From: Ylistrum balloti
Lineage: Eukaryota
NCBI RefSeq assembly: GCF_031769215.1
Contig: NW_026783079.1
Location: 1 to 62,940 of the forward strand
Length of the DNA: 62,940 nt
Reading direction: 5' to 3'
Position numbers and translations under genes: made by a program
In this document: one piece after another, positions 12,633-59,091 of the stretch
Numbering within the stretch: the first letter of the stretch is position 1
Layout: each line of letters begins with the position of its first letter
Notes under the pieces: generated by a model
Database searches by the model: none
The model's input: the letters and a program-made list of their open reading frames with translations, nothing else
Told to the model about the DNA's origin: nothing

Positions 12633-12658
12633 GTAACTCTAGTTAGTAGGCAACATCT

Positions 12659-34333: not shown

Positions 34334-35209
34334 TTATGTAAAAAGTTGTTGAATATAGTCTTCTGAAAAGCGTTTAATAGCATCTTGTTTTTTCTCTAAG
34401 TCGCCAAGAGGCGGAACGCCATACAGTAGCCAGGGGACTGTAACAACATCTGTAATACCAATATCGCGTTGTGCTTTGTAACCATCTAAACCAAATTGGT
34501 CAATACAAACAGCTTGAATCTCAAATGAATCCTTCTGGCGCCCACGATCGTTGAGCAACGTGTGTAATTTTTCGATGGTTTCTTTTAGCTCTACTAGCGT
34601 CATCATCGCTGACGTCCAGCCATTACCATAGGTTACAGCGCGTTTTAAAGCTGGTAAAGAATGTCCGCCAATATAAATAGGTACGTTCTCTGATGGAGCT
34701 GGGCGCATTTTGATGCGACCAATATCAAAAAAATCACCGTGATATTCAAACCAATCGCCTGTGAGTAGACCTTGAATAATTTCTAAAGATTCATTGACCC
34801 GTTTGCCACGCTGTTTAAATTCTGTACCACACCATTTAAATTCTTCTGGGAGCCAACCAATGCCAGCGCCAAACCCAAAGCGATTCTGACTTAAAACGGC
34901 AAGCGAACCTAATTGTTTTGCCAGTAAAACAGGATTTCGAACACCTACCTTGATGACGCTGCTATAAAAGCGAATATGTGTCGTTGCTGCTGCGAGACTG
35001 GCTGCAGCAATCAGTGGTGACACAAAAGGTGTATCTTCGGTCCACATGCGTTTGCCGTCTGATGTATAAGGGTAGGCGGCAGATACTTCTTCTGAATAAA
35101 AAATAGAATCAGGTAGTGCAATTGATGTAAAACCATATTCTTCAGCGGTTTTAGCAAGCTCAATGTAGTGCTCAGGATTGGTCATTGCTAGTGACATTGT
35201 AAATTTCAT
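34334..35209 (-). CDS. LLM-class, probably F420-dependent oxidoreductase
   Basis: AKTAEEYGF..I.LPD, RNPVLLAKQ, GAGIGWLPEEF, PIYIGGHS.PALKRA. Co-operonic with cofGH. Confidence 0.82.
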   Translation of the reverse strand: MKFTMSLAMTNPEHYIELAKTAEEYGFTSIALPDSIFYSEEVSAAYPYTSDGKRMWTEDTPFVSPLIAAASLAAATTHIRFYSSVIKVGVRNPVLLAKQLGSLAVLSQNRFGFGAGIGWLPEEFKWCGTEFKQRGKRVNESLEIIQGLLTGDWFEYHGDFFDIGRIKMRPAPSENVPIYIGGHSLPALKRAVTYGNGWTSAMMTLVELKETIEKLHTLLNDRGRQKDSFEIQAVCIDQFGLDGYKAQRDIGITDVVTVPWLLYGVPPLGDLEKKQDAIKRFSEDYIQQLFT

Positions 35210-35251
35210 GTTTATTTCACCTCTTGTCTCAATGTATCAATCTTAAATATG

Positions 35252-36523
35252 TTATAGGGCATTTTCAAATTTATATGTAAATGTTTGATCTGTTGTTAAT
35301 TCTTGATAGGACCCAAAAATTTCTTGTGGGTGTTCAAGTTGTGACAGTGGATCTTGCTCTATTTCTTGTTCCTCTAGAACGCGGCTAAATTGACGGTGTA
35401 TTTCGTAGGTCGTACGACGTTCGACTGGAACTCTACCCGCATCACGAATGGCATGACGTAACATTGCTGGTGTCATGAGCTGGCCGTGGCTTGCACCTGC
35501 TGTTGTTGAAATGCTTTCATTCATTAAGGTGCCACCTAGGTCATTGACACCACAATTAAGTAGCCAAGATGCCATCCGTAATCCCTCTTTGACCCAAGAG
35601 GCTTGAATGTTTTTAATCGTAGCCCCCAACATAAGGCGTGCAATGGCATACATTCGAATAATATCATTGCCTGTAGGGCCTGGTTGAACACCTGTAATGT
35701 CTTGTTTTATAAATAGGGGGGCTTCTTGATGGACAAAGGATAAGGGAACGAATTCTGTAAACCCTCCTGTCTGTTTTTGAATATCTCGAAGCAGCGCCAT
35801 ATGCGCAGCACGTTCCTCTTTGGTTTCTACATGACCAAACATCATCGTTGATGTTGTCGGGATACCAAGCTTATGAGCTGTGGTAACAATTTGGATCCAC
35901 TCTTGTGTTGAAATACGACCAGGAGAAATACGTTTGCGCAGTGTATCATTTAAGATTTCTGCAGACGTACCTGGTAGAGAACCAATGCCAGCATCTTTTA
36001 GGGCTGATAAATAGTCGTAAAATGTGCGTTTCGAACGAATGGCACCATACTTTACCTCTTCTGGAGAAAAGGCATGTAAATGCAGTTTAGGTAGGGCTTG
36101 GTGCAACTCACGGCACAAATCAATATAGATTTCTCCGTCAATAGATGGTGCTAAACCTGCTTGTAAGCAGACTTCGGTTGCACCATAGGAGAGGGCTTCT
36201 TGAGCACGGCGAATAATTTCATCTGTCGGTAAAAAATAGCCTTCTTCTGAACGTAAATCTCGAGAAAATGCACAAAATTGACAGGTCTTGATACATACAT
36301 TGGTGAAATTGATATTTCGGTTGACCACATAGCTAACTTGATCTCCACACTGAAGTTCTCTGAGGTAATCTGCTGTTAGTACTAATGCTGTTAACTCAGG
36401 ACCTGTTACTGAAAACAGTGTAGTAGCATCGTCTTGCTTGAGTTCCTTACCTTCTAAGCAATGCTCAAGAATCGTACGGATGTTAGGTGTTATTGTTTGT
36501 AAAACGGATTGTAAATCTGTCAT
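35252..36523 (-). CDS. cofH: FO synthase subunit CofH
   Basis: NRNINFTNVC..TC.FC, LHLHAFSPEE, PGTSAEIL, TSTMMFGHVET, NIQASWVK, NDLGGTLMNESIS. Start taken as ATG 36523, just after the cofG stop. Confidence 0.92.
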   Translation of the reverse strand: MTDLQSVLQTITPNIRTILEHCLEGKELKQDDATTLFSVTGPELTALVLTADYLRELQCGDQVSYVVNRNINFTNVCIKTCQFCAFSRDLRSEEGYFLPTDEIIRRAQEALSYGATEVCLQAGLAPSIDGEIYIDLCRELHQALPKLHLHAFSPEEVKYGAIRSKRTFYDYLSALKDAGIGSLPGTSAEILNDTLRKRISPGRISTQEWIQIVTTAHKLGIPTTSTMMFGHVETKEERAAHMALLRDIQKQTGGFTEFVPLSFVHQEAPLFIKQDITGVQPGPTGNDIIRMYAIARLMLGATIKNIQASWVKEGLRMASWLLNCGVNDLGGTLMNESISTTAGASHGQLMTPAMLRHAIRDAGRVPVERRTTYEIHRQFSRVLEEQEIEQDPLSQLEHPQEIFGSYQELTTDQTFTYKFENAL

Positions 36524-36527
36524 ATCT

Positions 36528-37688
36528 TTAAGCTGCGGGCCTACCCATTTTTTGGGGTGGTACATCGAATAAGGTTTGTAATCGATAGGACTGTTTTTGG
36601 ACGTGTTCATGTAGGCTAGCATCTAACCATGTTGACGTCATATAACGTTCATATATCGGGAGACGTGGTTTAAGAGAAAACCCCATTTCTTGACACAGGT
36701 TACGTAGATGGTCAATCATTGGCCAGGGATGCGTATGATTAATATAATCTGGTGTTACTGGGGAAATACCGCCGAAATCATTAATACCAGCTGCAATTAA
36801 TGTTTGTATCGTGCTGGGATTTAAATTGGGTGGGGCCTGTACACTAATCTCGTCCTCTAAGATGAGGCGCGCAACTGCTACTGTCCAGGCAATATCCTGA
36901 GCATTAGGTTCTGGATATTCAGACATCGGTGTTGTTTCTTTGGCACGAAAGTTTTGGACAATGACCTCTTGAATATGACCGTAAGCACGGTGTAAGTCAC
37001 GAATAGCTAAGAGTGTGTCAATACGTTCCTGACGTGTCTCACCGATACCAATAAGTAAGCCCGATGTGAACGGAATACGTAGTTCTCCTGCTTGTTGTGT
37101 CATGTGTAGCCGGCGATCAGGGTGTTTATCTTTAGCACGATAATGGGGCATGCCTTTGCTGCAAAGTCTTAAGCTAACATTTTCTAGCATTAACCCTAAA
37201 CTAACATTGACTTCGCGTAGCTTCACCATATCGTCTTTTTTTAGGATGCCTGCATTTGTATGGGGCAGGAGGTTATGTGCTAATGCCTCTTTTGCTGACC
37301 AGTAGAGATAGTCAACCGTTGATTCAAACCCCCAGTTATGAAGTAACTTGGCATAGCTTTTAAATGTTGTTTCCGGTGTGTCTCCTAGACAAAGTAGGGC
37401 TTCTATACAGTTGTTTTCTTGTCCTTGTTGCAGGGCTGCTGTGATTTCACTGGGTGTCATTGTCCACTCTCCAACTTGTCCTGGAGAGCGCCGAAAAGAA
37501 CAATAGTCACAAAAGTTACGGCATAAATTTGTTACAGGTAAAAAGACTTTTGGTGAAAAGGTTAGTGTTTTTCCCCAGTAAGCTGTTCTACGTTTAGCTG
37601 CAGCGGTAAACAACTCTACTAAGTGTTTTTCTTTTACACCAGTTAAATCGTAAGCTGTCTCTTTAGAAATAGGACTTGAGAGATCCAT
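36528..37688 (-). CDS. cofG: FO synthase subunit CofG
   Basis: TFSPKVFLPVTNLCRNFCDYC, LPHTNAG, SLGLMLE, HIQEVIVQNFRAK, QAPPNL, NDFGGISP. Confidence 0.92.
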   Translation of the reverse strand: MDLSSPISKETAYDLTGVKEKHLVELFTAAAKRRTAYWGKTLTFSPKVFLPVTNLCRNFCDYCSFRRSPGQVGEWTMTPSEITAALQQGQENNCIEALLCLGDTPETTFKSYAKLLHNWGFESTVDYLYWSAKEALAHNLLPHTNAGILKKDDMVKLREVNVSLGLMLENVSLRLCSKGMPHYRAKDKHPDRRLHMTQQAGELRIPFTSGLLIGIGETRQERIDTLLAIRDLHRAYGHIQEVIVQNFRAKETTPMSEYPEPNAQDIAWTVAVARLILEDEISVQAPPNLNPSTIQTLIAAGINDFGGISPVTPDYINHTHPWPMIDHLRNLCQEMGFSLKPRLPIYERYMTSTWLDASLHEHVQKQSYRLQTLFDVPPQKMGRPAA

Positions 37689-37753
37689 ATTCGGTAAATC
37701 TTTCTAAAAATATCAGGGCAAACAGTAGCGAAGTATTAAGTAACCCTCATATC

Positions 37754-38563
37754 TTACGTATCTTTTTTAACAGATGCATCTGTTAAATTTTGTTCTACAT
37801 TTGCTGCGTCTAAAAATGCAGGACGCTCGCCAGCACCATGGGCAGTAATGCTGGTTCCACTTAGATAGCTGGCAGCATCTGAAGCTAAGTAAAGGCAAAT
37901 GCCTGCAATGTCTTGAGGTAGAGCTAAACGGCCTAGTGGTACAGTTGCAGCGACAGCGGCAATACCGTCTTCATCACCATAATGAAGATGAGATTGTTCT
38001 GTCAAAATCATGCCGGCTGTAATGGCATTGACTCTAACTTTAGGAGCCCATTCTACTGCCAACGATTGTGTTAAATTGAGTAAACCTGCTTTGGCTGCGC
38101 CATAAATTGCTGTACCTGGGGAAGGGCGCGTGCCGCTAACACTAGCGATATTGATAATACTTCCACCGTTTTCCTGTTGTTGCATCAAGGTATTTGCTGC
38201 TTGAGCACAGTAGAGTGGCCCAAGCAAATTTAAGGCAACAATTTTTTCAGAAAACCGTGGCGACATATCATCTGCTAAGGCAAAAGGTGTGCCTCCTGCA
38301 TTATTAATGAGGACATCTAAACGTTCGTAACGGTCTTTTATTTGTTGAATCGCTGATTCTATTTGTTGTGAGTCACGTACGTCCATGGCAATAAACGCTG
38401 CTTGGTTATCGCCAAAACTTGGTAGAGTTTCGGGCTTATTACGGCCGCTAACGATAACCGTTGCACCAGCCTGTAAGAATGCTTCAGCAATACCACGTCC
38501 AACACCTTTTGTACCGCCTGTGACCAAGATAACCTTAGCTGAGAAATCAAAATGGATGGTCAT
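37754..38563 (-). CDS. Short-chain dehydrogenase, resembling the mycobacterial steroid-cluster SDR Rv3549c
   Basis: TGGTKGVG, NNAGG, YGAAKAG, EWAPKVRVNAI, ATVPLGRLA. Confidence 0.85.
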   Translation of the reverse strand: MTIHFDFSAKVILVTGGTKGVGRGIAEAFLQAGATVIVSGRNKPETLPSFGDNQAAFIAMDVRDSQQIESAIQQIKDRYERLDVLINNAGGTPFALADDMSPRFSEKIVALNLLGPLYCAQAANTLMQQQENGGSIINIASVSGTRPSPGTAIYGAAKAGLLNLTQSLAVEWAPKVRVNAITAGMILTEQSHLHYGDEDGIAAVAATVPLGRLALPQDIAGICLYLASDAASYLSGTSITAHGAGERPAFLDAANVEQNLTDASVKKDT

Positions 38564-38570
38564 CGTGATG

Positions 38571-39059
38571 CTACGAGTTTCCTACCGTGTGGTAAGCACG
38601 GCGATAGTAAATAAGTGGTTGTTGCGTATCATCTGCAGCTGCTTCAATAACACGACCAATCGCAATGCAGTGGTCACCTTGAATGATAAGGTCATGAACG
38701 TCACAGGCCAGATAAGCCGCGCAATCAGGGATAATGGGTTGGTCATTTGTCGTTAACTTGCCTGCATACCCATCAAAATCTGGTGTTGGTTCGCGCCCGG
38801 GACGTGCAAAACTATTGGATATCTCTTCCTGTCCATGGGCTAAAATACTAACGGCAAATTGCTGAGATTCTTTTATCATTGATGGCAATCGGTTGGTACT
38901 AGCGAGACAAACAAGGACTAAAGGCGGTTCTAAGGAAAGTGAACTAAAGCTTGAAGCTGTCAGGCCATACATGTTGCCATCTAATTTTGTGCTGACAACT
39001 GTAACTCCTGATGCCCAAGAGGCGAGTGCTTGTTTAAATGCGTCTTGAATGGAAGCCAT
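38571..39059 (-). CDS. hsaB: Flavin reductase (HsaB-like partner of HsaA)
   Basis: FKQALASWASGVTVV, GLTASSFSSLSLEPPLV, GDH, PLIYYR. Confidence 0.7.
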   Translation of the reverse strand: MASIQDAFKQALASWASGVTVVSTKLDGNMYGLTASSFSSLSLEPPLVLVCLASTNRLPSMIKESQQFAVSILAHGQEEISNSFARPGREPTPDFDGYAGKLTTNDQPIIPDCAAYLACDVHDLIIQGDHCIAIGRVIEAAADDTQQPLIYYRRAYHTVGNS

Positions 39060-39065
39060 TGCTGT

Positions 39066-40208
39066 TTAATATCCTTTTAGTGTTGCTAAGCGGTTTTTAT
39101 GCCAGGCAGCATCGCCAAATAGGGTAGCTGCTGCACGAGCCCGTTTAAAGTAAAACCCAATATCATATTCATCTGTCACACCAACACCACCATGCATTTG
39201 GATACCTTCACTGGTAATTCGTTCAAAGGTGTCAGTCATTTTTGCTTTTGCTAGAGAGGCGAAGAGTGCAAGATCTTGATTTTTATTTCCCGCTGCTGCA
39301 GCTGCTGTTAAAACCGCAGATCGTGCTAAGGATAGATCTACAAATAGGCGCGCAGCCCGATGTTGTAATGCCTGAAAGGCTCCAATTGGCTGGTCAAATT
39401 GCTGGCGTTCTTTTAAATAATCCAGTGTTAAATCAAAAGCTGCTTGTGCAGCCCCCAGCATCTCAGCCGATAGTGCAATCGTTGCGAGATCAAAAATAGG
39501 GTCAAGTAGCGTTGCTGCCTCATTTTCTGACCCTAAACGTGCGCTCTCTTTTACGATTATATTTGTACATTCGATGATGGCGGTATTGCGGCCATCAATT
39601 TGGTGCTGCCTGGTTACCTTTAGGCCCGTCTGATCTTTTGGGACAAGAAATAGTGTCAGACCATCGCGGTCTTGAGTCTGGCCACCTGTGCGAAATAACA
39701 TAATATAGGTATCACTTATATGGCCGTCTAAAACGTGTGTTTTACGGCCGTTTAGCGTGTAGGTATCCCCTTCACGTTTGGCAGTCGCCTCAATATGGTA
39801 GCGATTATAGTGACTTTCTTGTTCTTGGTGGGCAAGGGTTATGATCAGGTTGCCGGTAGCAAGTTTTGGCAGGAATTCTTGACACAGCGTTTTATTGCCA
39901 GCCATTTTTAAGAGTTCCGTTGCTAGAATAGTCGTTGATAAAAGGGGCTCTGGCATTAATTTACTACCAGTCGCTTCTAAGAGTAAGCAAACTTCAAAAA
40001 AACTTAAATCTGCGCCACCATAGGTTTCCGGAATTGCCAGTCCTAAAAAGCCTAACTCTGCTAATTGTTGCCAAAGTTTTGGGTCATAGCCTGGTAAACT
40101 GCGGTCGTCACGGTAACGTCGTAGCGCCTCAATATCTACTTGCTCTTGAACAATTTTGGTGATGGTTTCAACAAGTAATTTTTGTTCTGTTGTTAATATC
40201 GTGTTCAT
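39066..40208 (-). CDS. Acyl-CoA dehydrogenase (likely beta subunit of a heteromeric pair)
   Basis: WQQLAELG, YLKERQQFDQPIGAFQALQHR, QMHGGVGVTDEY. Confidence 0.88.
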   Translation of the reverse strand: MNTILTTEQKLLVETITKIVQEQVDIEALRRYRDDRSLPGYDPKLWQQLAELGFLGLAIPETYGGADLSFFEVCLLLEATGSKLMPEPLLSTTILATELLKMAGNKTLCQEFLPKLATGNLIITLAHQEQESHYNRYHIEATAKREGDTYTLNGRKTHVLDGHISDTYIMLFRTGGQTQDRDGLTLFLVPKDQTGLKVTRQHQIDGRNTAIIECTNIIVKESARLGSENEAATLLDPIFDLATIALSAEMLGAAQAAFDLTLDYLKERQQFDQPIGAFQALQHRAARLFVDLSLARSAVLTAAAAAGNKNQDLALFASLAKAKMTDTFERITSEGIQMHGGVGVTDEYDIGFYFKRARAAATLFGDAAWHKNRLATLKGY

Positions 40209-40215
40209 ATGACAT

Positions 40216-41412
40216 TTATACCGACGGTAACCCTAAAACACGTTTGGCAATAATATTAAGCTGAATTTCTGAACTGCCACCTTCAATTGTACTGGCGCGG
40301 CTGCGTAACCAATCTCGTGTTGTCGCCTGTTCTTCGTCTGTAAATCCAGGACCTTCCCAACCTAGTGCTTGTGGGCCTGCGATTCGTGTTGCTAGATCAA
40401 AACGACGTTGTTTGAGTTCGCTGCCACATAATTTTAAGATTGAGCTTTCAGGGCCTGGTGCGGCACCTGCTGCCAACGTTTGCTGAATACGCTCGGTGGT
40501 TAAACCGTAGCACATTTCATCAATAGCGTAGTTGACAATGTCGCAGCGCAAAAACGGATCTTTCAGTGGGCCTTGTGGCGTATTTTGGTAGGTACGGGTA
40601 GCTTCAACGAGCTTCATTTCAGTACCAGTAAGTTGGGTACCAATAGATTTGCCAATCGTTGTACGCTCATAGCCTAGTAAGGCTTTTGCAACTTGCCAAC
40701 CGCTGTTTACCTGACCAACTATATTGTTGACATTAGCTGTCGCGTTATCTAAGAAAACTTCGCAAAAAGGTGAACTACCGCTAATCAAGGGAATCGGGCG
40801 TACAGAGATAGCATCTTGCAACATGTCAACCAAGATAAAGGTGATACCTGCTTGTTTTTTAACGGTTTTATCTGTACGGGTTAAACAGAAAATCCAGTCA
40901 GATTTATCGGCGTGGGAGGTCCAAACTTTTTGCCCGTTGATGATGACCTTATCGCCATCAATCTCAGCTGTTGTTTGCAAGCCAGCTAGATCAGAACCAG
41001 CTCCTGGTTCTGAATAACCTTGACACCAGCGGGTTTCGCCAGAAACAATTTTTGGTAAATGTTCTTTTTTTTGGGTTTCTGTACCGTAATCAAGTAGGGT
41101 TGGTCCAATCATCACCAGGCCAAAGCCCACAAGCGGTGGTGGTACTTTAAGACGCTCTAATTCTTGTTCAAGAATCTCTGCTTCATCGTGTGTTAAACCG
41201 CCTCCACCATACATGGTTGGCCAAGTTGGTGCTGTAAAGCCTTTTTCGAGACTCACCTCAAACCAGCGTTTGACGTCCGCTTCAGGCTCTGGGTGCAAGC
41301 GGCCGCCCCAAAAGCCGTCAAAGCGGCCTTTGCGTGTGCCATAAAGAGACTGCGGCACATTCGCTTTTAGCCAAGCTTGCAGGTCTTTACGAAATAGATC
41401 TAAATTGGCCAT
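40216..41412 (-). CDS. Acyl-CoA dehydrogenase (likely catalytic alpha subunit)
   Basis: WCQGYSEPGAGSDLA, NGQKVWTS, TIEGGSSEIQLNIIAKRVLGLP. Confidence 0.9.
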   Translation of the reverse strand: MANLDLFRKDLQAWLKANVPQSLYGTRKGRFDGFWGGRLHPEPEADVKRWFEVSLEKGFTAPTWPTMYGGGGLTHDEAEILEQELERLKVPPPLVGFGLVMIGPTLLDYGTETQKKEHLPKIVSGETRWCQGYSEPGAGSDLAGLQTTAEIDGDKVIINGQKVWTSHADKSDWIFCLTRTDKTVKKQAGITFILVDMLQDAISVRPIPLISGSSPFCEVFLDNATANVNNIVGQVNSGWQVAKALLGYERTTIGKSIGTQLTGTEMKLVEATRTYQNTPQGPLKDPFLRCDIVNYAIDEMCYGLTTERIQQTLAAGAAPGPESSILKLCGSELKQRRFDLATRIAGPQALGWEGPGFTDEEQATTRDWLRSRASTIEGGSSEIQLNIIAKRVLGLPSV

Positions 41413-41421
41413 ATTTGGTGT

Positions 41422-42420
41422 TTAAGCAGGTGCTCTGTTAGACGTTGGAGCTGTCGAAGCTTCGGAATAAAACTGTTTATACCATTTGCGTAATTTCATA
41501 ACAGGGCCGTCGTCACCGCATAAAAGTGGCACATCACGGTAACATTTGTTTTCCCAAATTTCGATATCTTCTAGAAAACCTGTGGTTAAGTTATCAATAT
41601 ACCCCTTAGAAAAGCTTTCGGTCTGTTTTGGGTCAGTACCTTTTTTGAGCATGACACCAAAGCGTAAATCTAAGCTATTTGCGTCGACCATTGTATGGGC
41701 ATTGATTAAGCGGCTTTCTAAGAAACCATTCATCACAGAAATTTGAAAGCCAGGGCCGTAATACGTTGCTGTTAGGTCGAAATAATCCTTACCGCCACCA
41801 CGGGGGTAAGCAACCCCTTTGTTATATTGAATCGCTTTATGCTCATTAAAATCATTGGAAAATTCTTCAATAATTGTGCCATGTACAGGTGCAAAATGGG
41901 CAATATCAACAACATTTTCGACGATTTCACGAGAATGGGTCTTGATATGAATTTTACTATGTTCCCAGTAGGTCCATTCTTCGGATTCAGATTCTGGCAG
42001 TAGTGGAATTTCAAAATCAGGTGCCTTGCCTTCGGGGTCAAACCAAAGGAAGATAACACCATTTTTTTCTTGTAACAGCCAAGTTGTTGTCCAAGAGCCA
42101 CTTGCTGCTCGTTTTGGGATATCTTGGCAATAAGGTATTTCTGTACACTCGCCTTGTCCATTAAACCGCCAAGAATGAAATGGGCATTCTAGGGTGTCTT
42201 CAATTACTTTGCCTTTACCTAAGTCCATCCCTAAATGTGGGCAATAGGCATCAATGACATGAAGGTCTCCAGATTGACCGCGAAAACAAACCAGCCGATG
42301 GCCAAAATAGGTCATCGATTTGACGTCCCCAGGTTGATATTCATTGGAAAACCCAATTACAAACCAACCGCGAGGAAATCCCTCTATACGATCTTTACGT
42401 CGTTCTGTACGTTGTTCCAT
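41422..42420 (-). CDS. kshA: Rieske oxygenase, 3-ketosteroid 9-alpha-hydroxylase KshA-like
   Basis: FPRGWF, Rieske CPH..CPFH, mononuclear-iron ENVVDIAHFAPVH, DIEIWENK, DGPVMKLRKWYKQFY. Steroid-cluster context. Confidence 0.7.
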   Translation of the reverse strand: MEQRTERRKDRIEGFPRGWFVIGFSNEYQPGDVKSMTYFGHRLVCFRGQSGDLHVIDAYCPHLGMDLGKGKVIEDTLECPFHSWRFNGQGECTEIPYCQDIPKRAASGSWTTTWLLQEKNGVIFLWFDPEGKAPDFEIPLLPESESEEWTYWEHSKIHIKTHSREIVENVVDIAHFAPVHGTIIEEFSNDFNEHKAIQYNKGVAYPRGGGKDYFDLTATYYGPGFQISVMNGFLESRLINAHTMVDANSLDLRFGVMLKKGTDPKQTESFSKGYIDNLTTGFLEDIEIWENKCYRDVPLLCGDDGPVMKLRKWYKQFYSEASTAPTSNRAPA

Positions 42421-42427
42421 AATCGCG

Positions 42428-42622
42428 TTACGACTCTTCTAAACGGATTGCTGCCCGTGGGCAATTTGCAACAGCTGATTCAAGCTGTTCACGTAGGGAT
42501 TCATCGGGATTTTCATTTAGAACGGTTAACGTGTCGTCTTCTTCTACGCGAAAAATCTCGGGTGCGATTTGTTCGCAAATGGCATTTGCTTCACAGGAAT
42601 CATAATCTATGATAATTTTCAT
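42428..42622 (-). CDS. Small [3Fe-4S]-type ferredoxin
   Basis: CEANAIC...CP (CxxNxxC, with Asn at the second Cys position). Confidence 0.88.
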   Translation of the reverse strand: MKIIIDYDSCEANAICEQIAPEIFRVEEDDTLTVLNENPDESLREQLESAVANCPRAAIRLEES

Positions 42623-47435: not shown

Positions 47436-47496
47436 TATTTGGGATATTCTAAATACATAAAGAATTTGACAAATAAACATAATGAGGTCTGCAAAG

Positions 47497-48696: not shown

Positions 48697-48719
48697 ACGT
48701 AATCTAAAGGCCTCTAATA

Positions 48720-49631: not shown

Positions 49632-49675
49632 CAGCGCATTACCAACAAATAGACTAGGAAAATTAGAGACAAACA

Positions 49676-50515: not shown

Positions 50516-50520
50516 AGACG

Positions 50521-51324: not shown

Positions 51325-51481
51325 AAATATGAAGTATGTATATAGAGGCCTGATGAGTTGCTTTACTGCTACGCAGCCTTCGAGGATGTTTATTATATTG
51401 ATCTCGGAATTGCTTTGTAGTAAGACAAATAATCACCCTTATTTTTGTAGATGAATGAAAGTTGATTAAAGGTATGTTTTT

Positions 51482-52360
51482 ATGACAAAAATTAAAGCTG
51501 CTATTATCGGTTCCGGTAATATTGGTACAGATCTTTTATATAAAATGCAGCGTAGTGAAATACTCGAGCCTGCTTGGATGGTTGGTATTGATCCAGATTC
51601 TGATGGATTAAAGCGCGCTGCTGGTATGGGGTTAAAAACGACCTACGAAGGTGTTGATGGGCTTGTACCTCATATTCAGGATGACCAAATTCGGATTGCT
51701 TTTGATGCAACATCTGCTTATGTTCATGCAGAAAACTCACGCAAGGTCAATGAGCAAGGTGTTGTGATGGTTGACCTTACGCCTGCAGCGATTGGTCCCT
51801 ATTGTATTCCACCAGTGAACTTACAAGAACAAGTTGGTTCTAAGGTTATGAATATTAATATGGTGACCTGTGGTGGACAGGCTACGATTCCAATGGTTTA
51901 TGCGGTTAGTCGTGTACAACCAGTTGCTTACGGGGAAATCGTCGCAACGGTTTCCTCAAAATCTGCTGGTCCGGGTACACGTAAAAATATTGATGAGTTT
52001 ACGCGTACAACTGCAGGAGCTGTCGAGAAATTAGGTGGGGCGAAACAAGGTAAAGCGATTATTATCATTAATCCTGCAGAACCACCACTGATTATGCGTG
52101 ATACGATTCATTGTTTAACCGAAGAAGAGCCAGATCAAGCAGCGATTACTCAGTCTGTGCATGACATGATTGCGGCAGTGCAGCAATATGTTCCTGGTTA
52201 CACCCTAAAAAATGGCCCCGTTTTTGATGGCAAACGCGTTTCAATTTTTTTAGAGGTTGAAGGCTTAGGCGATTATTTACCTAAATATGCAGGTAACCTT
52301 GATATTATGACAGCTGCGGCTTTGCAAGCTGGTGAACTTTTTGCCAAAGAAATGTCATAA
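51482..52360 (+). CDS. hsaG: Acylating aldehyde dehydrogenase (HsaG/MhpF/DmpF)
   Basis: [53 protein letters not shown]. Confidence 0.88.
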
Positions 52361-52433
52361 AGACTGTAAAACCAAGATATAAATTCAGATTATTATTTGG
52401 AATTGTTGAAAAAATATAAAAAGTGAGACTGAT

Positions 52434-53465
52434 GTGGACATAACAGGTAAACAGGTCACATTGCATGACATGTCACTACGAGACGGTATGCATGCCAAAC
52501 GTCATCAAATAAGTATCGAGCAAATGGTACAAATCTCAACAGCGTTAGATGCCGCAGGTGTACCACTTATTGAAGTAACGCATGGAGATGGCATTTCTGG
52601 AGCCTCTGTGAACTATGGGTTTCCTGCTCATAGTGACCGTGAGTACCTTGAGGCTGTTATTCCCAAAATGAAGAACGCTAAAATTTCAGCACTACTGTTA
52701 CCTGGAATTGGGACGGTTGATGATCTTAAAATGGCTTATGATCTAGGGGTTTCAACCATCCGTATTGCGACACATTGTACGGAGGCTGATGTTGCTGAGC
52801 AGCATATTGGTATGGCTTCAGGGATGGCCGGTTTAGATGTTGTTGGGTTTTTAATGATGGCACATATGATTCCTGCGGAGCAGCTGTTAGAGCAAGCTCT
52901 ATTGCAGGAGAGTTATGGTGCAAATTGTATTTATGTTACGGATTCTGCTGGTGCAATGTTGCCTGATGAAGTTACAGAAAAAATTGCACTATTTCGTCGT
53001 GAACTTAAACCAGACACGGAAGTAGGTTTCCATGGTCATCATAATCTCGGTATGAGTATTGCCAATTCTCTTGCAGCAGTCGAGGCTGGAGCTATTCGTA
53101 TTGATGGCTCTGCCGCTGGTCTTGGTGCTGGTGCTGGTAATACACCGCTCGAAGTGTTTGTAGCCGTTCTTGATCGGATGGGGGCAACTCATGGTGTTGA
53201 CCTTTGGCAACTAACAGACGTGGCAGAAGATCTTATAGTGCCGCTGATGGATCAAGCTATCCGTATTGATCGTGATTCTTTGGTCCTTGGTTATGCTGGC
53301 GTGTATTCTTCCTTTTTACTCCATGCCAAGCGTGCTGCTGAGAAATATGGTCTTAGCTCACGTGATATCTTAGTTCGTCTAGGGGAAATGAAGACCGTTG
53401 GAGGCCAGGAAGATATGATTGAAGATGTCGCATTAACAATGTGTAAAGAACAACAATCTGCATAA
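52434..53465 (+). CDS. hsaF: 4-hydroxy-2-oxovalerate/hexanoate aldolase (HsaF/DmpG)
   Basis: [43 protein letters not shown]. Confidence 0.88.
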
Positions 53466-53478
53466 ACGGTAGTTATCT

Positions 53479-55194
53479 ATGACATCTACAGAGCATTCGT
53501 GGGATAAAGAAGTTGATTTACTTGTTGTTGGTTCTGGCGGTGGCGGTATGGCCGCGGCGCTTCGTGCCCATGATTTAGGTAGTGAGGTTCTGCTGATTGA
53601 AAAGGGTGACCTCTATGGCGGCTCAACAGCAATCTCTGGTGGTGTTTGTTGGGTTGGGAATAACCGGCATATGCCAAAAGCTGGTATTCAAGACAGTGAT
53701 GAAGAAACTCTGACCTACCTTAAACACATTACCAAAGGGGAGGTTGCTGAGGAAAAAATTACGACCTATGTTCGTGAATCTAATCGTGTTATCAACTATT
53801 TACATGACAACAGTCAGGTAAAATTTACAGCTGTTGCCAAGTATACAGACTATTATCCAGAAGCGCCCGGCGGTAAAATGGGCGCAAGGTCTATGGAATG
53901 CCCTAGGTTTAATGCAAAGGTTTTAGGACCACGTTTAATGGAACTGCAGCGGCCTCATATTCAATCTCAGATTATGGGTAAATTTGGCATTATGGCTGGA
54001 GAAGCGCATCAAGCGCTTGTTGGCAACTGGCGGACCAAGTTTTTTATGGTCTGGCAATTTATCAAATATCTGCTGCGTTCTGGTGCCCGTAAGCGTTGTG
54101 GTAGAGACACAAGTCTTACAGCAGGTAATTCGCTGATGGCGCGTTTTTTTACCTCGTTAATTGACCGTAATGTTGAGATGTGGAAGGAGTCTTCTGCTCA
54201 GGAACTTATTATTGAAGATGGGCATGTTCTTGGTGCACTTGTTGAAAAAACGGGACAAAGCTTACGCATTCGGGCACGTCAAGGTGTTGTACTTGCTGCT
54301 GGTGGATTTGAACATAATCAAGACATGCGAAACCAGTACCAGAAACAACCGATTAAGACAGAGTGGAATGTTGGTAATACATTAAACGTTGGTGATGGTA
54401 TTAAGCTAGGGCTTACTGCTGGTGGTACGTTAGACCTAATGGATGAAGCGTGGTGGACACCGATTTGTCAGGTGCCAGGTAAAACGCCAGCTTTTGTTTT
54501 AGTTGTTGAAAAAAGTCTTCCCCATGGCCTTTTTGTTAATAATCAAGCCAAACGTTTTACCAATGAAGCCGCGCCTTATATTGATGTTGTTCATGGTATT
54601 TATGGTGATGATGATGGACAAGGTAAAACGATTCCAGCCTGGCTTATTTTTGATGCTACCTTCAGGCAGCGGTTTCCTGTTGGGCCAGTACCTCCAGGGT
54701 ATGCTGCTTCAGATGGCGTGATGAAACGGTTTTTTAAGAATGGTTTTTTAACGAAAGCGGACAGTTTGACAGCACTGGCTGAAAAAATAGATCTCGATCC
54801 TGTGCAATTACAAGAGACGATTAATCGTTTTAATACCAATGCGCGTCAAGGGCTAGATCCGGATTTTGGCCGTGGTAAGAGTGCCTCTGATCGCTATTAT
54901 GGTGATCCTCGTGTGAAGCCCAATCCTTGTTTAGGTCCTGTTGAAACTGCACCATTTTATGCGATTCGTATCTATCCTGGTGATTTAGGTACCAAAGGTG
55001 GTCTCATTACCGATACGCAGTCACGTGTACTACGTGAAGATGGTACAGCAATTGCTGGCCTTTATGCGACAGGCAATTGTAGTGCTTCTATGATGGGGCG
55101 TACGTATCCTGGGGCAGGGGGAACAATCGGTCCTGCGATTACTTTTGGCTTTTTAGCGGCAGAAGCTGCTGCTCAGGATACAACCGGAGGTTAA
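53479..55194 (+). CDS. kstD: 3-ketosteroid delta1-dehydrogenase
   Basis: VVGSGGGGM, GGSTAISGG, YTDYYPE, DFGRG.SA.DRYYGDP, PGDLGTKGGL, YPGAGGTIG. Confidence 0.8.
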   Translation: MTSTEHSWDKEVDLLVVGSGGGGMAAALRAHDLGSEVLLIEKGDLYGGSTAISGGVCWVGNNRHMPKAGIQDSDEETLTYLKHITKGEVAEEKITTYVRESNRVINYLHDNSQVKFTAVAKYTDYYPEAPGGKMGARSMECPRFNAKVLGPRLMELQRPHIQSQIMGKFGIMAGEAHQALVGNWRTKFFMVWQFIKYLLRSGARKRCGRDTSLTAGNSLMARFFTSLIDRNVEMWKESSAQELIIEDGHVLGALVEKTGQSLRIRARQGVVLAAGGFEHNQDMRNQYQKQPIKTEWNVGNTLNVGDGIKLGLTAGGTLDLMDEAWWTPICQVPGKTPAFVLVVEKSLPHGLFVNNQAKRFTNEAAPYIDVVHGIYGDDDGQGKTIPAWLIFDATFRQRFPVGPVPPGYAASDGVMKRFFKNGFLTKADSLTALAEKIDLDPVQLQETINRFNTNARQGLDPDFGRGKSASDRYYGDPRVKPNPCLGPVETAPFYAIRIYPGDLGTKGGLITDTQSRVLREDGTAIAGLYATGNCSASMMGRTYPGAGGTIGPAITFGFLAAEAAAQDTTGG

Positions 55195-55197
55195 ATA

Positions 55198-55674
55198 ATG
55201 ACGATATCTGATTTAATTCAAGCACCGCTACAGTTTGATTTGTCCTGCACACTTGCAGCCACCCCAGATGAGGTTTTTACATTTATTACAGATTTTGAGG
55301 GAATGCCAGGTTGGATGCCACTGATGAAGCGTGTTGAGGTTGATAATACAAAGGCACAGGCACCTGGTGAAGTTGGAGCTGTACGGGTCATTTATCCACC
55401 AGTTGGTAGCGCTACCTATGAAGAAGTACGCGTTTTTGAACGCCCAAATCTACTGGCCTATAGTGCTAGCGATGACTCTTTAATGGGGATGTATACAAAC
55501 CATATCGGCGTTTTAACTTGTGAAGCTACAGGGGAAGAGCATACGCTATTTTCCTGGCGTACCTACGCTGATCCCGGTAAAAATGTGATTATGCGCTTTT
55601 TTGGGCGTTTGGTGTTTGGCTATGTTTTTCGTCATAGCTTTAAGAAATTAAAGCAGCGTTTTCCGGTTTCCTGA
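55198..55674 (+). CDS. SRPBCC (polyketide cyclase/START-like) protein
   Basis: PDEVFTFITD...PGW, GAVRVI. Confidence 0.75.
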   Translation: MTISDLIQAPLQFDLSCTLAATPDEVFTFITDFEGMPGWMPLMKRVEVDNTKAQAPGEVGAVRVIYPPVGSATYEEVRVFERPNLLAYSASDDSLMGMYTNHIGVLTCEATGEEHTLFSWRTYADPGKNVIMRFFGRLVFGYVFRHSFKKLKQRFPVS

Positions 55675-55704
55675 GTAGATATTGTTAATAAACTAGGAGC
55701 AGAC

Positions 55705-56157
55705 ATGGCACAAAAACACGTGGAACCAAAGCAAATCATTGCTGCAAAAGAAGGTTGGTATAACCTTAATCCAGATAATCCACATCTGCTGGGCAGTCAA
55801 TGTAAACAGTGTGGGACCTACAGCTTTCCGGCAGAGACGCTTTACTGTAAAAATCCGGCCTGTGATAGTACGTCATTCGAGGAGGTTGCTCTAAGTCGTC
55901 GGGGGAGCATTTGGTCTTATACCAATGCCTGTTATCAGCCACCAGCTCCGTATATCGCTACGACGGATCCTTATGAGCCTTTTACCTTAGCAGCCGTAAA
56001 GCTAGAAAAAGAAGGATTAATTATTCTTGGACAAGTAACCTCTGGGGTTACGGTTGATGATTTACAGATTGGTATGGAGGTTCAGTTGGTGCTCGATACG
56101 CTTTTAGAGACCAATGAGACGAAGCAGGTCATTTGGCGCTGGCAGTTAGTTGCCTAG
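55705..56157 (+). CDS. DUF35 Zn-ribbon/OB-fold thiolase partner
   Basis: CKQC..YSFP....C....C, GSIWSYT, PF, IGMEV. Confidence 0.88.
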   Translation: MAQKHVEPKQIIAAKEGWYNLNPDNPHLLGSQCKQCGTYSFPAETLYCKNPACDSTSFEEVALSRRGSIWSYTNACYQPPAPYIATTDPYEPFTLAAVKLEKEGLIILGQVTSGVTVDDLQIGMEVQLVLDTLLETNETKQVIWRWQLVA

Positions 56158-56208
56158 CTAAAAGTAATTTTGGAGATTTATTATTTCGTTGTTTCTTAAG
56201 GGGGATCT

Positions 56209-57003
56209 ATGAATAGGCAAAAAGATCACAATAACTTTATTAGTTTCTATGTCGTTATTCTGCTGCTTTTAATAACGAGTCATCAGGCTCTGGCCTCTCC
56301 AGCAGATGACATGATTTCTTTGTTACGCAAAATAACTGTTTCGACAGGAAAAAAGCCAGCGATTTTACTTATTGATATGCATGTTGAGGATCTTGTCTAT
56401 GACCGAAAACTAAAGGCATATTTTTATGAGTTTCCTGGTAATACCAAACTATATGCGGAGCAGAAGCGTGTTATTGAATTTGGACTAGATAATGGCTATG
56501 ACGTTTATGATATTAATTTTATGGGTAGTAATATGTCTAAAAGGGGTAAATTTAATTTTTTACTTGAACGAAAAGCACGAGGGACTGCTACATTTGAAGA
56601 TATCGTTGACCTTAAATATAGTCGGGGAGGAGCTGCCAATTACCATAATATACTGAAGCCAGAGAATGACTCTTTTACAAAGACGACATTAACAGCAGAC
56701 TTAGAAAACACGGATAATGTTGTTGTAATGGGATTTGAAACGGAGATATGTTGCCGAGAGACAGTAGAGAGTGCTCTTAAACAAGGAAAAAAGGTGATTG
56801 TTGATCGACGACTGACATCGACAGAATTACAACGTAACCTTACAGGAAGATCTGCCGATACTGAATATCCTGTCTGGAAACCAGGTGATACTGAATGGGA
56901 TGCTAAGTGGCAGGAGCTTAAAGAACAATATGGAGATCAGTTATTACTAACAGATCAAGAAACAACTTCTTACGATGATGTTCAATTACCAGCTTGTGAG
57001 TAG
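56209..57003 (+). CDS. Exported isochorismatase-like cysteine hydrolase
   Basis: Signal peptide ..QALA. ILLIDM (Asp), KPENDSF (Lys), VMGFETEICC.ETV..A (Cys). Confidence 0.6.
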   Translation: MNRQKDHNNFISFYVVILLLLITSHQALASPADDMISLLRKITVSTGKKPAILLIDMHVEDLVYDRKLKAYFYEFPGNTKLYAEQKRVIEFGLDNGYDVYDINFMGSNMSKRGKFNFLLERKARGTATFEDIVDLKYSRGGAANYHNILKPENDSFTKTTLTADLENTDNVVVMGFETEICCRETVESALKQGKKVIVDRRLTSTELQRNLTGRSADTEYPVWKPGDTEWDAKWQELKEQYGDQLLLTDQETTSYDDVQLPACE

Positions 57004-57095
57004 CTTTTTTTGAGTATGGATTTTAGGACACTAACTAAATTAATTAACGAAAAGTAAATTTATGTTTAGCGTTTTGATTGAAAAATGGAGTGAAT

Positions 57096-58289
57096 ATGCC
57101 CGTAGGTGAAGTAGCTATTTTAGGTGTTGGGATGCATCCCTGGGGAAAATGGGGACGCAATTTTGTTGAATATGGTGTCCAGGCTGCCCGCGAGGCATTA
57201 AACGACGCGGGTGTGGCTTGGCAAGATATTCAATTTGTCGCGGGTGCCAATACGATTCGCAATGGTTATCCTGGTCAAGTCTCTGGGGCGACCTTTGCCC
57301 AGGCTCTTGGGTGGAATGGTTGCCGAATCTCAAGTTCCTATGCTGCTTGTGCTTCTGGGTCTATGGCGCTCAATTCTGCGCGTACACAAATTTTAGCTGG
57401 ACTTGCAGATGTAGCACTTGTCATTGGTGCGGATACCACACCAAAAGGTTTTTTAGCACCTACTGGCGGTGATCGTCCCGATGATCCTGATTGGTTAAGG
57501 TTTCGTTTGCAAGGGGTTACTAATCCTGCTTATTTTGCTTTTGCTGCTCGTCGGCGTATGGATTTATATGGTATGACCGAAGATGATTTAGCACAAGTAA
57601 AAATCAAAAATGCCAAGCATGGTTTGCATAATCCCAATGCTCGCTACAAAAAAGCCTTTACCAAAGAAGATGTTCTTGCTTCACCTATGGTTGCAGACCC
57701 TTTGCGACTACTACATATTTGTGCCACAAGCGATGGGGCAGCAGCACTCGTTATTTGTAGTTTAGATTATGCCAAAAAATTAGGAGTGCAAAACCCTGTA
57801 CGCATTGCTGCAATATCTACAGCAACGCCGACATATCCTAGTACGCAAGTTGAAATGCCTGATTTAGCGACAGATTCAAGTTTTGTTGTACCTGAGCCAA
57901 GTGCCCAGTTTAAGAAGGCTGTTGTTGATGCTGCTTATGAAGAAGCGGGATTAGGGCCAGAGGATATTGATTTAGCTGAAGTGTATGACTTAAGTTTAGC
58001 CATGGAGTTAGATTGGGTTGAAAACATTGGTTTTGCTAAAGAAGGGCAGGCCGAGCAGTTACTTCGCAGTGGTGATACCTCAATTGGTGGTAAAAAACCT
58101 GTCAATACAAGTGGTGGACTGGGATGTTTTGGGGAGGCTGTACCGGCTCAGGCAATTGCTCAGGTTTGTGAACTAACCTGGCAGCTACGGGGGCAGTCTG
58201 GAAGGCGTCAAGTCGAGAATGCCAATGTGGGGATTACTGCCAATCAAGGTCTTTTTGGTCATGGATCATCGGTGATTGTGAAAAAATAA
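57096..58289 (+). CDS. SCP2-type thiolase/lipid-transfer protein (Ltp/BbsB-like)
   Basis: AACASG, VKIKN..HG..NPNA, SDGAAA, AEVYD, VNTSGGL, NQGLFGHG. Confidence 0.88.
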   Translation: MPVGEVAILGVGMHPWGKWGRNFVEYGVQAAREALNDAGVAWQDIQFVAGANTIRNGYPGQVSGATFAQALGWNGCRISSSYAACASGSMALNSARTQILAGLADVALVIGADTTPKGFLAPTGGDRPDDPDWLRFRLQGVTNPAYFAFAARRRMDLYGMTEDDLAQVKIKNAKHGLHNPNARYKKAFTKEDVLASPMVADPLRLLHICATSDGAAALVICSLDYAKKLGVQNPVRIAAISTATPTYPSTQVEMPDLATDSSFVVPEPSAQFKKAVVDAAYEEAGLGPEDIDLAEVYDLSLAMELDWVENIGFAKEGQAEQLLRSGDTSIGGKKPVNTSGGLGCFGEAVPAQAIAQVCELTWQLRGQSGRRQVENANVGITANQGLFGHGSSVIVKK

Positions 58290-58311
58290 CGTAACAAGGA
58301 TTAGATCAACG

Positions 58312-59091
58312 ATGGATTTTCAGATTCCGCGTCTGGTTATTTTTTTTGTCGTTTATCTTGTTTTATTACTGTTAGAAACCAAGTTTCCGCGGCGTCCCGT
58401 TGTTGAAAGAGTGTCTATACACCAAATACGTAATCTAGCATTGGGGTTGCTTGATACGGTAATTGTGCGGTTGCTATTACCTATTGTTCCTGTTGGCGTT
58501 GCCCTAAAATGTGCCCAGATGGAGCAAGGCTTTTTTTATTGGCTAGGAGTTACGGGGTGGGTTGCTGTTGTTCTGACTGTTATTATTTTTGACTTTGCGA
58601 TTTATCTTCAGCATGTTTTTTTTCATAAGGTCCCGTTTTTATGGCAACTCCACGCTGTACACCATAGTGATATAGATTTAGATGCCAGTAGTGGAGTACG
58701 GTTTCATCCTATAGAAATACTGCTTTCTCTATTATTTAAAGTTGTTTTAGTTATTCTTCTCGGCGTGCCTGCGGTCGGTGTATTGTTCTTTGAAATTATC
58801 CTGAACGTGACTGCAATGTTTAATCATGCGAACTTGCGATTACCTAAGTTAATAGACTGCTTTTTACGTTATATTCTAGTTACACCAGACATGCACCGTA
58901 TACATCATTCTGTCCATCAAGATGAGACAGATAGTAATTTTGGCTTCAATTTGTCTTGTTGGGACCGTCTGTTTACAACATACCGTGCTGAGCCTCGAGA
59001 TGGTCATCAAGATATGCTGACTGGTGTTTGCGAGCTTCCCCAGCATCCTAAAACGTTATTAGGCTTGTTGTTGATGCCTTTTAAAAGATGA
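58312..59091 (+). CDS. Sterol desaturase/fatty-acid hydroxylase family
   Basis: His boxes HVFFH, HAVHH, HRIHH, plus RFHPIE and NFGFNLS.WDRLF. Confidence 0.88.
   Translation: MDFQIPRLVIFFVVYLVLLLLETKFPRRPVVERVSIHQIRNLALGLLDTVIVRLLLPIVPVGVALKCAQMEQGFFYWLGVTGWVAVVLTVIIFDFAIYLQHVFFHKVPFLWQLHAVHHSDIDLDASSGVRFHPIEILLSLLFKVVLVILLGVPAVGVLFFEIILNVTAMFNHANLRLPKLIDCFLRYILVTPDMHRIHHSVHQDETDSNFGFNLSCWDRLFTTYRAEPRDGHQDMLTGVCELPQHPKTLLGLLLMPFKR

Follow-up and report, generated by a model that had tools for sequence, protein, structure and literature searches.

The co-occurrence of a 3-ketosteroid delta-1-dehydrogenase (KstD), the 9-alpha-hydroxylase oxygenase KshA and the oxygenase HsaA, together with a meta-cleavage module, is the signature of the aerobic 9,10-seco route of steroid degradation. 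The systems closest to the locus described here are the cholesterol cluster and KstR regulon of Mycobacterium tuberculosis and Rhodococcus jostii RHA1 (kstD, kshA, hsaACDB, hsaEFG, chsE, ltp2-chsH2, Rv3549c and Rv3520c), with which it shares the enzyme families and the presumed order of steps, and the proteobacterial clusters, such as tes of Comamonas testosteroni. A survey of metagenomes identified only Actinobacteria and Proteobacteria as steroid degraders; in sponge bins it also recorded KshA and HsaC clusters that were divergent (PMC5790920). A genomic survey likewise confines aerobic steroid degradation to these two phyla (PMC4810484). Among the papers listed, our literature search found none joining Dadabacteria with any of the steroid-catabolism terms used, and a search on KshA in other phyla, along with one sponge-symbiont paper, returned nothing on steroid catabolism; the paper with the most joint mentions concerns sterol biosynthesis by a eukaryote-like pathway (PMC8237579). 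Here we analyse a 62.9-kb stretch of DNA without any N (the window), which makes up the whole of contig JAUZWB010000974.1 in the assembly GCA_031769215.1 of the scallop Ylistrum balloti. At positions 34334-59091 it carries what is probably a chromosomal catabolic cluster for the steroid nucleus, working by the aerobic 9,10-seco route. The DNA probably belongs to a diderm bacterium, uncultured and akin to Candidatus Dadabacteria, that was assembled along with the scallop.

The cluster consists of two divergent blocks, at 34334-44918 on the minus strand and at 47482-59091 on the plus strand. Open reading frames (ORFs) were scanned against NCBIfam and Pfam, and structures were compared via sequence matches to PDB entries. 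All gene families named in a preliminary description of the window were recovered in their places, including KstD, KshA, HsaA and the meta-cleavage module, and its assignment of the cluster to the 9,10-seco breakdown of rings A and B is supported. The genes assigned to steroid breakdown or lying among them are as follows.

37754-38563, minus strand: short-chain dehydrogenase/reductase (SDR) of the PRK07856 type, earlier called Rv3549c-like (391 bits against a cut-off of 255)
38571-39059, minus strand: flavin reductase, likely partner of HsaA (HpaC_Thermus 144 bits, HsaB 104 bits, each under its cut-off)
39066-40208, minus strand: acyl-CoA dehydrogenase (ACAD), small (beta-type) subunit (pimD_small 246 bits, IpdE2 172 bits)
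40216-41412, minus strand: ACAD, large (alpha-type) subunit (pimC_large 278 bits)
41422-42420, minus strand: Rieske oxygenase of the KshA type in its 'short' form, 332 aa (Pfam Rieske and KshA_C, the latter 203 bits)
42619-43299, minus strand: SRPBCC-fold protein 1 (Pfam COXG, Polyketide_cyc2 and Polyketide_cyc, each weak)
43257-44918, minus strand: distant KstD-family flavoprotein (PRK12844 309 bits against a cut-off of 789; PDB 7P18 170 bits)
47482-48696, plus strand: HsaA-type oxygenase (3-HSA hydroxylase; NF045629 402 bits against a cut-off of 450, next family 251 bits)
48720-49631, plus strand: type I extradiol dioxygenase that takes the functional place of HsaC/TesB (TIGR03213, BphC, 304 bits against 231 bits for HsaC)
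49676-50515, plus strand: HsaD/TesD-type meta-cleavage product hydrolase (HsaD 174 bits against 147 bits for BphD)
50482-51324, plus strand: HsaE, 2-oxopent-4-enoate-type hydratase (TIGR03220, 363 bits against a cut-off of 409)
51482-52360, plus strand: HsaG, acylating aldehyde dehydrogenase (TIGR03215, 472 bits, over its cut-off)
52434-53465, plus strand: HsaF, 4-hydroxy-2-oxoacid aldolase (TIGR03217, 538 bits, over its cut-off)
53479-55194, plus strand: KstD, 3-ketosteroid delta-1-dehydrogenase (PRK12844/PRK07843 598 bits against cut-offs of 788-789)
55198-55674, plus strand: SRPBCC-fold protein 2 (Pfam Polyketide_cyc2, 57 bits)
55705-56157, plus strand: DUF35 protein (ChsH2 C-terminal OB fold plus zinc ribbon; Pfam PF01796, PF12172)
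56209-57003, plus strand: isochorismatase-like protein (Pfam PF00857, 34 bits)
57078-58289, plus strand: SCP2-type thiolase-like 'lipid-transfer protein' (PRK06059, 696 bits against a cut-off of 424)
58312-59091, plus strand: di-iron membrane enzyme of the FA_hydroxylase / sterol desaturase family (Pfam PF04116, 105 bits)

To the earlier gene list the isochorismatase-like gene between those for DUF35 and the thiolase has to be added, and the protein it had called HsaB is a flavin reductase of the generic HpaC type.

The KshA-type protein aligns over nearly its whole length with PDB 4QDC and 2ZYL (246 and 241 bits, the next unrelated Rieske match reaching 81 bits), with the ligands of the Rieske centre (CxH...CxxH) and of the iron site (DxxHxxxxH plus D, i.e. 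His-His-Asp) in register. In the tree it falls into a clade of short proteins (approx. 300-340 aa) which is separated from both proteobacterial and actinobacterial KshA with 99/97 support. The plus-strand KstD, for which PRK12844/PRK07843 were the best-scoring families, matches PDB 7P18 over its full length (471 bits), and its alignment to 4C3X starts only at residue 213; the KstD tree, with too few rows and very long branches, was uninformative. HsaA forms a Dadabacteria-like clade of its own, near the proteobacterial HsaA and far from the actinobacterial, and the identities follow the same order: 70% to a contig of a metagenome-assembled genome (MAG) designated L081, at most 56% to Proteobacteria and at most 40% to Actinomycetota. 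HsaD, in a tree rooted on BphD, nests within proteobacterial TesD and adjoins Comamonadaceae. Among PDB entries, the large ACAD best matches two steroid ACADs of the alpha2beta2 type, Tcur3483 (144 bits) and ChsE4-ChsE5 (4X28, 132 bits), and Tcur3481 (119 bits) is among the top matches of the small one.

For comparison across phyla, HsaA was scanned with one genome per species and the best 80 loci (L001-L080) were taken; since the search patterns favour close relatives, this is not a full census. All 80 loci belong to Proteobacteria, with HsaA identities of 43-56%. An SDR homologue with at least 60% coverage was found in 52 of them (best 55-59% identical), DUF35 is 51-57% identical to its homologues in proteobacterial steroid loci, and the thiolase is 68-70% identical to those adjoining DUF35 there. 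The actinobacterial comparison relied on two steroid loci from plasmid records, to which the window is less similar (HsaA 37-40%, HsaD 31-32%, KshA 36%, dioxygenase 38%). The cluster had been called actinobacterial in style, and this description holds only for the KstR-type operator and for an F420-class oxidoreductase, both discussed below; HsaA, HsaD, HsaEFG, the SDR and the thiolase are clearly nearer to proteobacterial proteins, and KshA belongs to a third clade. The cluster is thus best read, from these tree placements and identities, as a putative third lineage of the 9,10-seco pathway with mosaic affinities, and not as actinobacterial-style.

We infer the order of steps by homology to characterised Mycobacterium/Rhodococcus and Comamonas enzymes, and the substrates and the regulation along with it. 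The ACAD pair and the aldolase-type pair of DUF35 and SCP2-thiolase would complete the removal of the side chain, and KstD would put in the delta-1 double bond. With a reductase not encoded in the window, the short KshA would hydroxylate C9, after which ring B would open and ring A become aromatic, and HsaA and the flavin reductase would form a catechol. The BphC-like extradiol dioxygenase would then cleave ring A, the TesD-like hydrolase would free the C/D-ring acid and a dienoate, and HsaE, HsaF and HsaG would turn the latter into pyruvate and propionyl-CoA. Repression of the two blocks probably acts at a TetR-type operator, TAGAAC-NN-GTTTCA, one per promoter. The substrate may be cholesterol, other scallop or algal sterols, or smaller steroids.

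The same divergent arrangement is preserved in one relative MAG. L081 (57% GC) carries the genes for an SRPBCC protein, KstD, HsaF, HsaG, HsaE, HsaD, the dioxygenase and HsaA on one strand and a divergent arm with a 413-aa ORF, KshA and two ACADs; the identities to the window are 59-82%, including 73% for KstD, 66% for the large ACAD and 59% for SRPBCC protein 2, which takes the same place after kstD. The position of the dioxygenase gene between hsaA and hsaD is kept there as well. In addition, another contig of the scallop assembly (L084; JAUZWB010000104.1, GCA_031769215.1, 39.8% GC) encodes at 7467-13118 a cytochrome P450, two KshA paralogues, an HsaA paralogue and a BphC-like dioxygenase, and a Dadabacteria MAG (L082, 62% GC) has the same arrangement plus a ferredoxin. 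Because it shares the assembly, the unusual GC content and the lineage, L084 probably comes from the same bacterium as the window, which would then possess at least two steroid loci. Short KshA proteins are found more widely: most of the 120 matches listed are 52-60% identical and come mainly from metagenome sources. Two homologues from other lineages have steroid-type genes beside them. One lies on a large contig together with an MlaE-type permease, a P450, acyl-CoA synthetases, SCP2 and NMO. Another (59%), from a Myxococcales MAG (L100, 10001-11726), stands by a 3-oxo-5-alpha-steroid 4-dehydrogenase-family gene (Steroid_dh), Amidohydro_2 and an ACAD pair. Homologues of SRPBCC protein 1 and of the isochorismatase-like protein, as well as of a 170-aa ORF located between the blocks, were not found in the comparison loci that we fetched.

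The contig is bacterial from end to end (RluD, a bS6-bS18 fusion, L9, GlmS, PcrA, sulfate assimilation, cysteine synthases and two hybrid histidine kinases), and therefore represents a co-assembled bacterium; horizontal transfer into the scallop genome was considered and ruled out on account of this dense bacterial content (ribosomal, GlmS, PcrA and Cys genes). The flank gene product PcrA is 60% identical to that of a Candidatus Dadabacteria MAG, with three further matches at 51-55% and the rest at 45% or less. KshA and the F420-class oxidoreductase are 74-77% and 73-76% identical, respectively, to those of relatives, and the nearest named matches of both, at 74% and 73%, are Dadabacteria MAGs (Dadabacteria being a class of Thermodesulfobacteriota in the NCBI taxonomy). 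The diderm, AT-rich and little-studied host proposed in the preliminary description is supported by these matches and by the markers LpxR, DUF1207 and an RhlB-type DEAD-box helicase, and a host among Actinomycetota, also contemplated there, disagrees with all three of PcrA, KshA and the oxidoreductase. A spirochaete host of the Leptospira kind, suggested by the name of the HEPN_LA2681 domain found between the blocks and by the 40% GC content, was ruled out by the same three proteins. At 8913-9975, lpxR is broken into two ORFs that overlap and cover positions 37-179 and 180-322 of the Pfam profile, a result of either an assembly frameshift or pseudogenisation. Two hybrid histidine kinase/response regulator genes with identical family matches (27214-29040 and 30666-32474) lie around cysK and an Rrf2-type regulator. 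It should be noted that a KshA homologue encoded on a bacterial contig (L084, 10001-11020) appears in NCBI and UniRef under the name of Ylistrum balloti, and that bacterial contigs of this assembly have in this way entered eukaryotic protein sets as scallop proteins.

The preliminary description had mentioned KstR-type operators, and two such sites precede the blocks. The following features are relevant here.

33733-34323, plus strand: TetR-family regulator, candidate repressor, convergent with the oxidoreductase gene (generic NCBIfam TetR matches)
44965-44978, no strand: KstR-type operator 1, TAGAACACGTTTCA (motif match)
47422-47435, no strand: KstR-type operator 2, TAGAACGTGTTTCA, 46 bp upstream of hsaA

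The two 14-mers, TAGAACACGTTTCA and TAGAACGTGTTTCA, are the only matches to TnnAACnnGTTnnA in the window and stand one before each block. As TnnAACnnGTTnnA is a degenerate consensus, for which approx. two chance matches are expected per window, the count alone proves nothing. The motif common to both sites is TAGAAC-NN-GTTTCA; they share all 12 specified bases, and with at most one mismatch allowed 0.36 sites would be expected, two being reached in seven of 100 shuffles. Operator 1 falls within a promoter-like site of the minus strand, between its two hexamers, and this overlap is the only result that we use of a promoter and terminator scan in which the counts were at or under the shuffled expectation. 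A 14-mer identical to operator 1 occurs in the divergent promoter region of L081, and the P450 operons are preceded by the perfect palindrome TAGAACACGTTCTA in L084 and by AAGAACGTGTTTCA in L082; these three loci range from 40 to 62% GC. Among the 80 proteobacterial loci, a motif of the TnGAACnnGTTnnA type occurs in just nine, once in each, irrespective of its position relative to genes. Because the motif is kept in the promoters of relatives, with shared bases and in front of the blocks, we accept TAGAAC-NN-GTTTCA, predicted as it is from a phylogenetic footprint, as a real operator. The TetR protein is 51% identical to one in the locus L093, which is likewise convergent beside the oxidoreductase gene; as an orthologue of KstR it was considered and found unsupported, its likeness to PDB entries being generic only.

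The minus block ends in three genes related to cofactor F420.

34334-35209, minus strand: LLM oxidoreductase, TIGR03619 (Rv2161c-type, F420-class; 192.7 bits against a trusted cut-off of 166.9)
35252-36622, minus strand: CofH, FO synthase subunit (TIGR03551, 466 bits against a cut-off of 374)
36528-37688, minus strand: CofG, FO synthase subunit (TIGR03550, 430 bits against a cut-off of 213)

Both FO synthase subunits are intact, with scores over their cut-offs, and no match to CofC, CofD or CofE was obtained among the scanned ORFs of the window. Our slight preference goes to the explanation that cofG, cofH and the LLM gene, perhaps with the TetR gene, form an independent neighbouring module which makes FO/F420 for unrelated ends and by chance lies downstream of the steroid operon. 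The order cofG-cofH-LLM recurs as a unit in two relatives (L092 and L093, in which the contig starts inside cofG), followed by differing genes. In another locus (L095) the genes upstream of cofG are non-steroid, and so is the context of the one locus that was read for a Pseudonocardiaceae homologue (57%) of the LLM protein, the only cluster protein whose nearest matches outside the lineage are actinobacterial (Pseudonocardiaceae, 55-60%). Furthermore, Dadabacteria is among the phyla whose genomes encode F420 biosynthesis according to a review (PMC8498797), and the presence of these genes is therefore a trait of the lineage. Against an independent module stand the co-directional arrangement with gaps of just 65 bp between the SDR gene and cofG and 42 bp between cofH and the LLM gene, and the situation in other steroid loci. 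In five proteobacterial ones, from Steroidobacteraceae-like and other uncultured bacteria (L003, L012, L015, L016 and L041), TIGR03619 LLM homologues (38-40%, at about 800-2500 in each) are encoded within approx. 4 kb of the orthologous SDR gene; the two that were scanned, from L016 and L041, score over the TIGR03619 cut-off. A metagenomic contig of 73% GC (L096, Ga0075421_100044003) carries at 1002-5653 an ORF with a CoA-transferase domain, approx. 50% identical to the ORF adjoining the dioxygenase gene in proteobacterial steroid loci, followed by the orthologous SDR (63.5%), cofG and cofH; here FO synthase apparently adjoins steroid genes a second time, in an unrelated setting. Functional coupling of the cofG-cofH-LLM tail to steroid breakdown, with the LLM protein as a deazaflavin-dependent steroid oxidoreductase, comes close to being an even prospect. 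We are more doubtful about the wider proposal of a deazaflavin step built into the catabolism of the steroid rings, in which the LLM protein would oxidise or reduce an intermediate with FO/F420 made via the operon's own cofG and cofH. The 9,10-seco pathway (short KshA, recruited BphC-like dioxygenase) would then have been put together independently for a third time, in a sterol-making lineage that would live with the scallop and feed on host or algal sterols. Whatever the case, the combination of F420 and steroid genes, which the preliminary description had called unfamiliar, looks less odd in the light of F420 biosynthesis reported for Dadabacteria and of the TIGR03619 LLM genes in some proteobacterial steroid loci.

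Several observations weigh against a 9,10-seco steroid cluster in a Dadabacteria-related host. The dioxygenase scores higher on BphC than on HsaC, not only with the family models, which corrects the earlier label HsaC, but also among structures (PDB BphC 1HAN 243 bits, M. tuberculosis HsaC 2ZI8 183 bits). In the tree, for which the program issued a long-branch warning, it forms a clade with L081, L082 and L084 (100/99). This clade neighbours four BphC references (99/93) and is not part of the one uniting actinobacterial HsaC and proteobacterial TesB (100/94); forcing all steroid-context dioxygenases together was rejected marginally by the approximately unbiased test (p = 0.045). HsaA, HsaD and both KstD proteins stay under the NCBIfam equivalog cut-offs, and the flavin reductase matches HpaC better than HsaB, i.e. 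it is generic. A ferredoxin-reductase type protein as the KshB partner gave no match among the scanned ORFs of the window; its gene may be located elsewhere in the genome. There is also no 3-beta-hydroxysteroid dehydrogenase or cholesterol oxidase, MaoC hydratase, transporter or C/D-ring gene in the window, the last of these in agreement with the preliminary description. Outside the cluster and its edge genes, 22 of the 28 ORFs of at least 100 aa were scanned (most of the others are nested in larger ORFs), with no match to KshB, IpdAB, EchA20 or CofC/D/E among the 22. The TetR protein shows no specific likeness to KstR in PDB comparisons (KstR2 30 bits, helix-turn-helix only). Finally, no independent sequencing run containing this strain was found; a macroalgal metagenome with 6% of the words yielded three spurious pieces of approx. 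40-50 bases.

These points might be taken to mean that the cluster degrades a non-steroid compound, for instance an aromatic of the biphenyl kind or some other polycyclic lipid, with enzymes that only resemble those for steroids. We consider this improbable. Of the three enzymes for which kinship with biphenyl or other aromatic enzymes had been contemplated in the preliminary description, the dioxygenase does group beside BphC, but HsaD nests in TesD, and KshA belongs to a separate clade, albeit one that is uncharacterised. Neither a bph ring-hydroxylating dioxygenase alpha/beta pair nor a dihydrodiol dehydrogenase is present, and the combination of KshA, KstD and HsaA is specific to the 9,10-seco route. 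The scores of HsaA, HsaD and KstD below equivalog level speak for this alternative; against it stand also an ACAD pair, a DUF35-thiolase pair and an SDR as in proteobacterial steroid loci, under an operator of the KstR type.

Marginally less probable still is that the genes remodel or turn over sterols which the bacterium makes itself, rather than external steroids. Sterol biosynthesis genes are reported from Dadabacteria (PMC8237579), and the plus block ends with the FA_hydroxylase / sterol desaturase-family gene, the neighbours of which in the Protein Atlas are generic bacterial FA_hydroxylase clusters only. However, the meta-cleavage enzymes and HsaEFG would destroy the nucleus and deliver central metabolites, which is catabolism and not modification, and the window is without any sterol synthesis gene.

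Catabolism of the steroid nucleus remains the preferred reading. Three further features are relevant to the origin of the cluster.

45010-46401, plus strand: HEPN_LA2681-domain protein, insert between the blocks (Pfam PF18733, 185 bits; GC 0.366)
46754-47266, plus strand: 170-aa ORF, part of the insert, without a family match above threshold
59141-59701, minus strand: resolvase-type serine recombinase bordering the cluster on the right (Pfam HTH_7 and Resolvase, the latter 120 bits)

The 2.5 kb separating the blocks are taken up by the HEPN_LA2681 gene and the 170-aa ORF, neither of them a steroid gene, and this insert together with the resolvase indicates that the neighbourhood has been rearranged. 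The HEPN_LA2681 gene is absent from L081, where its slot holds the single, unrelated 413-aa ORF. The GC content at third codon positions (GC3) is 0.29-0.43 in the cluster, 0.23-0.30 in the scanned genes of the left flank and up to 0.31 outside the cluster; it peaks in the distant KstD (0.43, the cluster maximum) and in SRPBCC protein 1, and drops at the right end of the cluster, where the resolvase gene sits. As the relatives sharing the cluster have 56-64% GC, the cluster would either come from a GC-richer member of the same lineage or lag behind the AT drift of the genome. A recent import or an assembly chimera from Proteobacteria or Actinomycetota, which would make the cluster uninformative on the host lineage, is the least probable of the alternatives, since the raised GC3 is explicable by these GC-rich relatives, through within-lineage transfer or incomplete AT drift, and since, the resolvase at the edge and the HEPN gene in the middle of the cluster notwithstanding, the cluster genes are nearest to Dadabacteria MAGs (64-82%, with the same synteny) and the pathway-specific enzymes of Proteobacteria and Actinobacteria are just 30-56% identical, and the flank PcrA likewise points to Dadabacteria. 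The shared lineage of flank and cluster genes also makes unlikely the chimeric contig that the preliminary description had envisaged.

Individual genes of this kind are not unseen, as database records already label Dadabacteria proteins as 3-ketosteroid 9-alpha-hydroxylase. The novelty lies in the overall picture, which is coherent: a conserved, apparently operator-controlled cluster in a Dadabacteria-like lineage that combines the short KshA with a BphC-like dioxygenase and has FO synthase and LLM genes attached. It would place the pathway outside the two phyla of the published surveys, in a lineage that is also reported to make sterols. It further suggests that other lineages of the same families can stand in for two key enzymes, a short form for KshA and a BphC-like protein for the dioxygenase that cleaves the ring, and profile surveys with strict cut-offs would therefore miss degraders of this type. 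The locus also supplies a concrete, testable case in which F420/FO may take part in steroid breakdown outside the Actinomycetota.

Compared with the M. tuberculosis and RHA1 system, the cluster has in common an operator of the TnnAACnnGTTnnA type before the operons, the heteromeric ACAD pair and the pairing of DUF35 with an SCP2 thiolase, as well as an LLM gene near steroid genes, as Rv3520c is, which we take to be an F420-class enzyme. It differs in that HsaA, the dioxygenase, HsaD and KshA are just 31-40% identical, KshA is approx. 55 residues shorter and of another clade, the dioxygenase is not in the HsaC clade, a KstR orthologue was not recognised, the LLM protein is of TIGR03619 and not TIGR03559, the FO synthase is split into cofG and cofH within the operon, and the host is diderm. 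The proteobacterial clusters (C. testosteroni tes and the Steroidobacteraceae-, Nevskiaceae-, Halieaceae- and sphingomonad-type loci among the 80 compared) are the closest outside the lineage for most genes, with best identities of 56% for HsaA, 48% for HsaD, 58% for HsaE, 80% for HsaG, 72% for HsaF, 59% for the SDR, 70% for the thiolase and 57% for DUF35, and the five loci with a TIGR03619 LLM gene share nearly the whole gene set of the window. In contrast, KshA and the dioxygenase are 38% identical to the proteobacterial proteins and of other clades, and none of the 80 loci has cofG or cofH within 10 kb. Biphenyl systems (Pseudomonas KF715, Polaromonas CJ2 and Rhodococcus pBD2/pRHL1) resemble the window in the dioxygenase, which is 40-44% identical to BphC and groups beside it, and in HsaE, HsaG and HsaF, which correspond by family to BphH, BphJ and BphI; unlike them, the window is without BphA or BphB, its hydrolase is of the TesD and not the BphD type, and the neighbouring genes are steroid-specific. 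Lastly, the plus-strand KstD aligns along its full length, including the region not covered by the Rhodococcus KstD1 structure 4C3X, with PDB 7P18, which we take to be AcmB, the cholest-4-en-3-one delta-1-dehydrogenase of Sterolibacterium denitrificans; AcmB belongs to a cholesterol pathway that does without oxygen, whereas the KstD gene of the window is surrounded by those of oxygenases.

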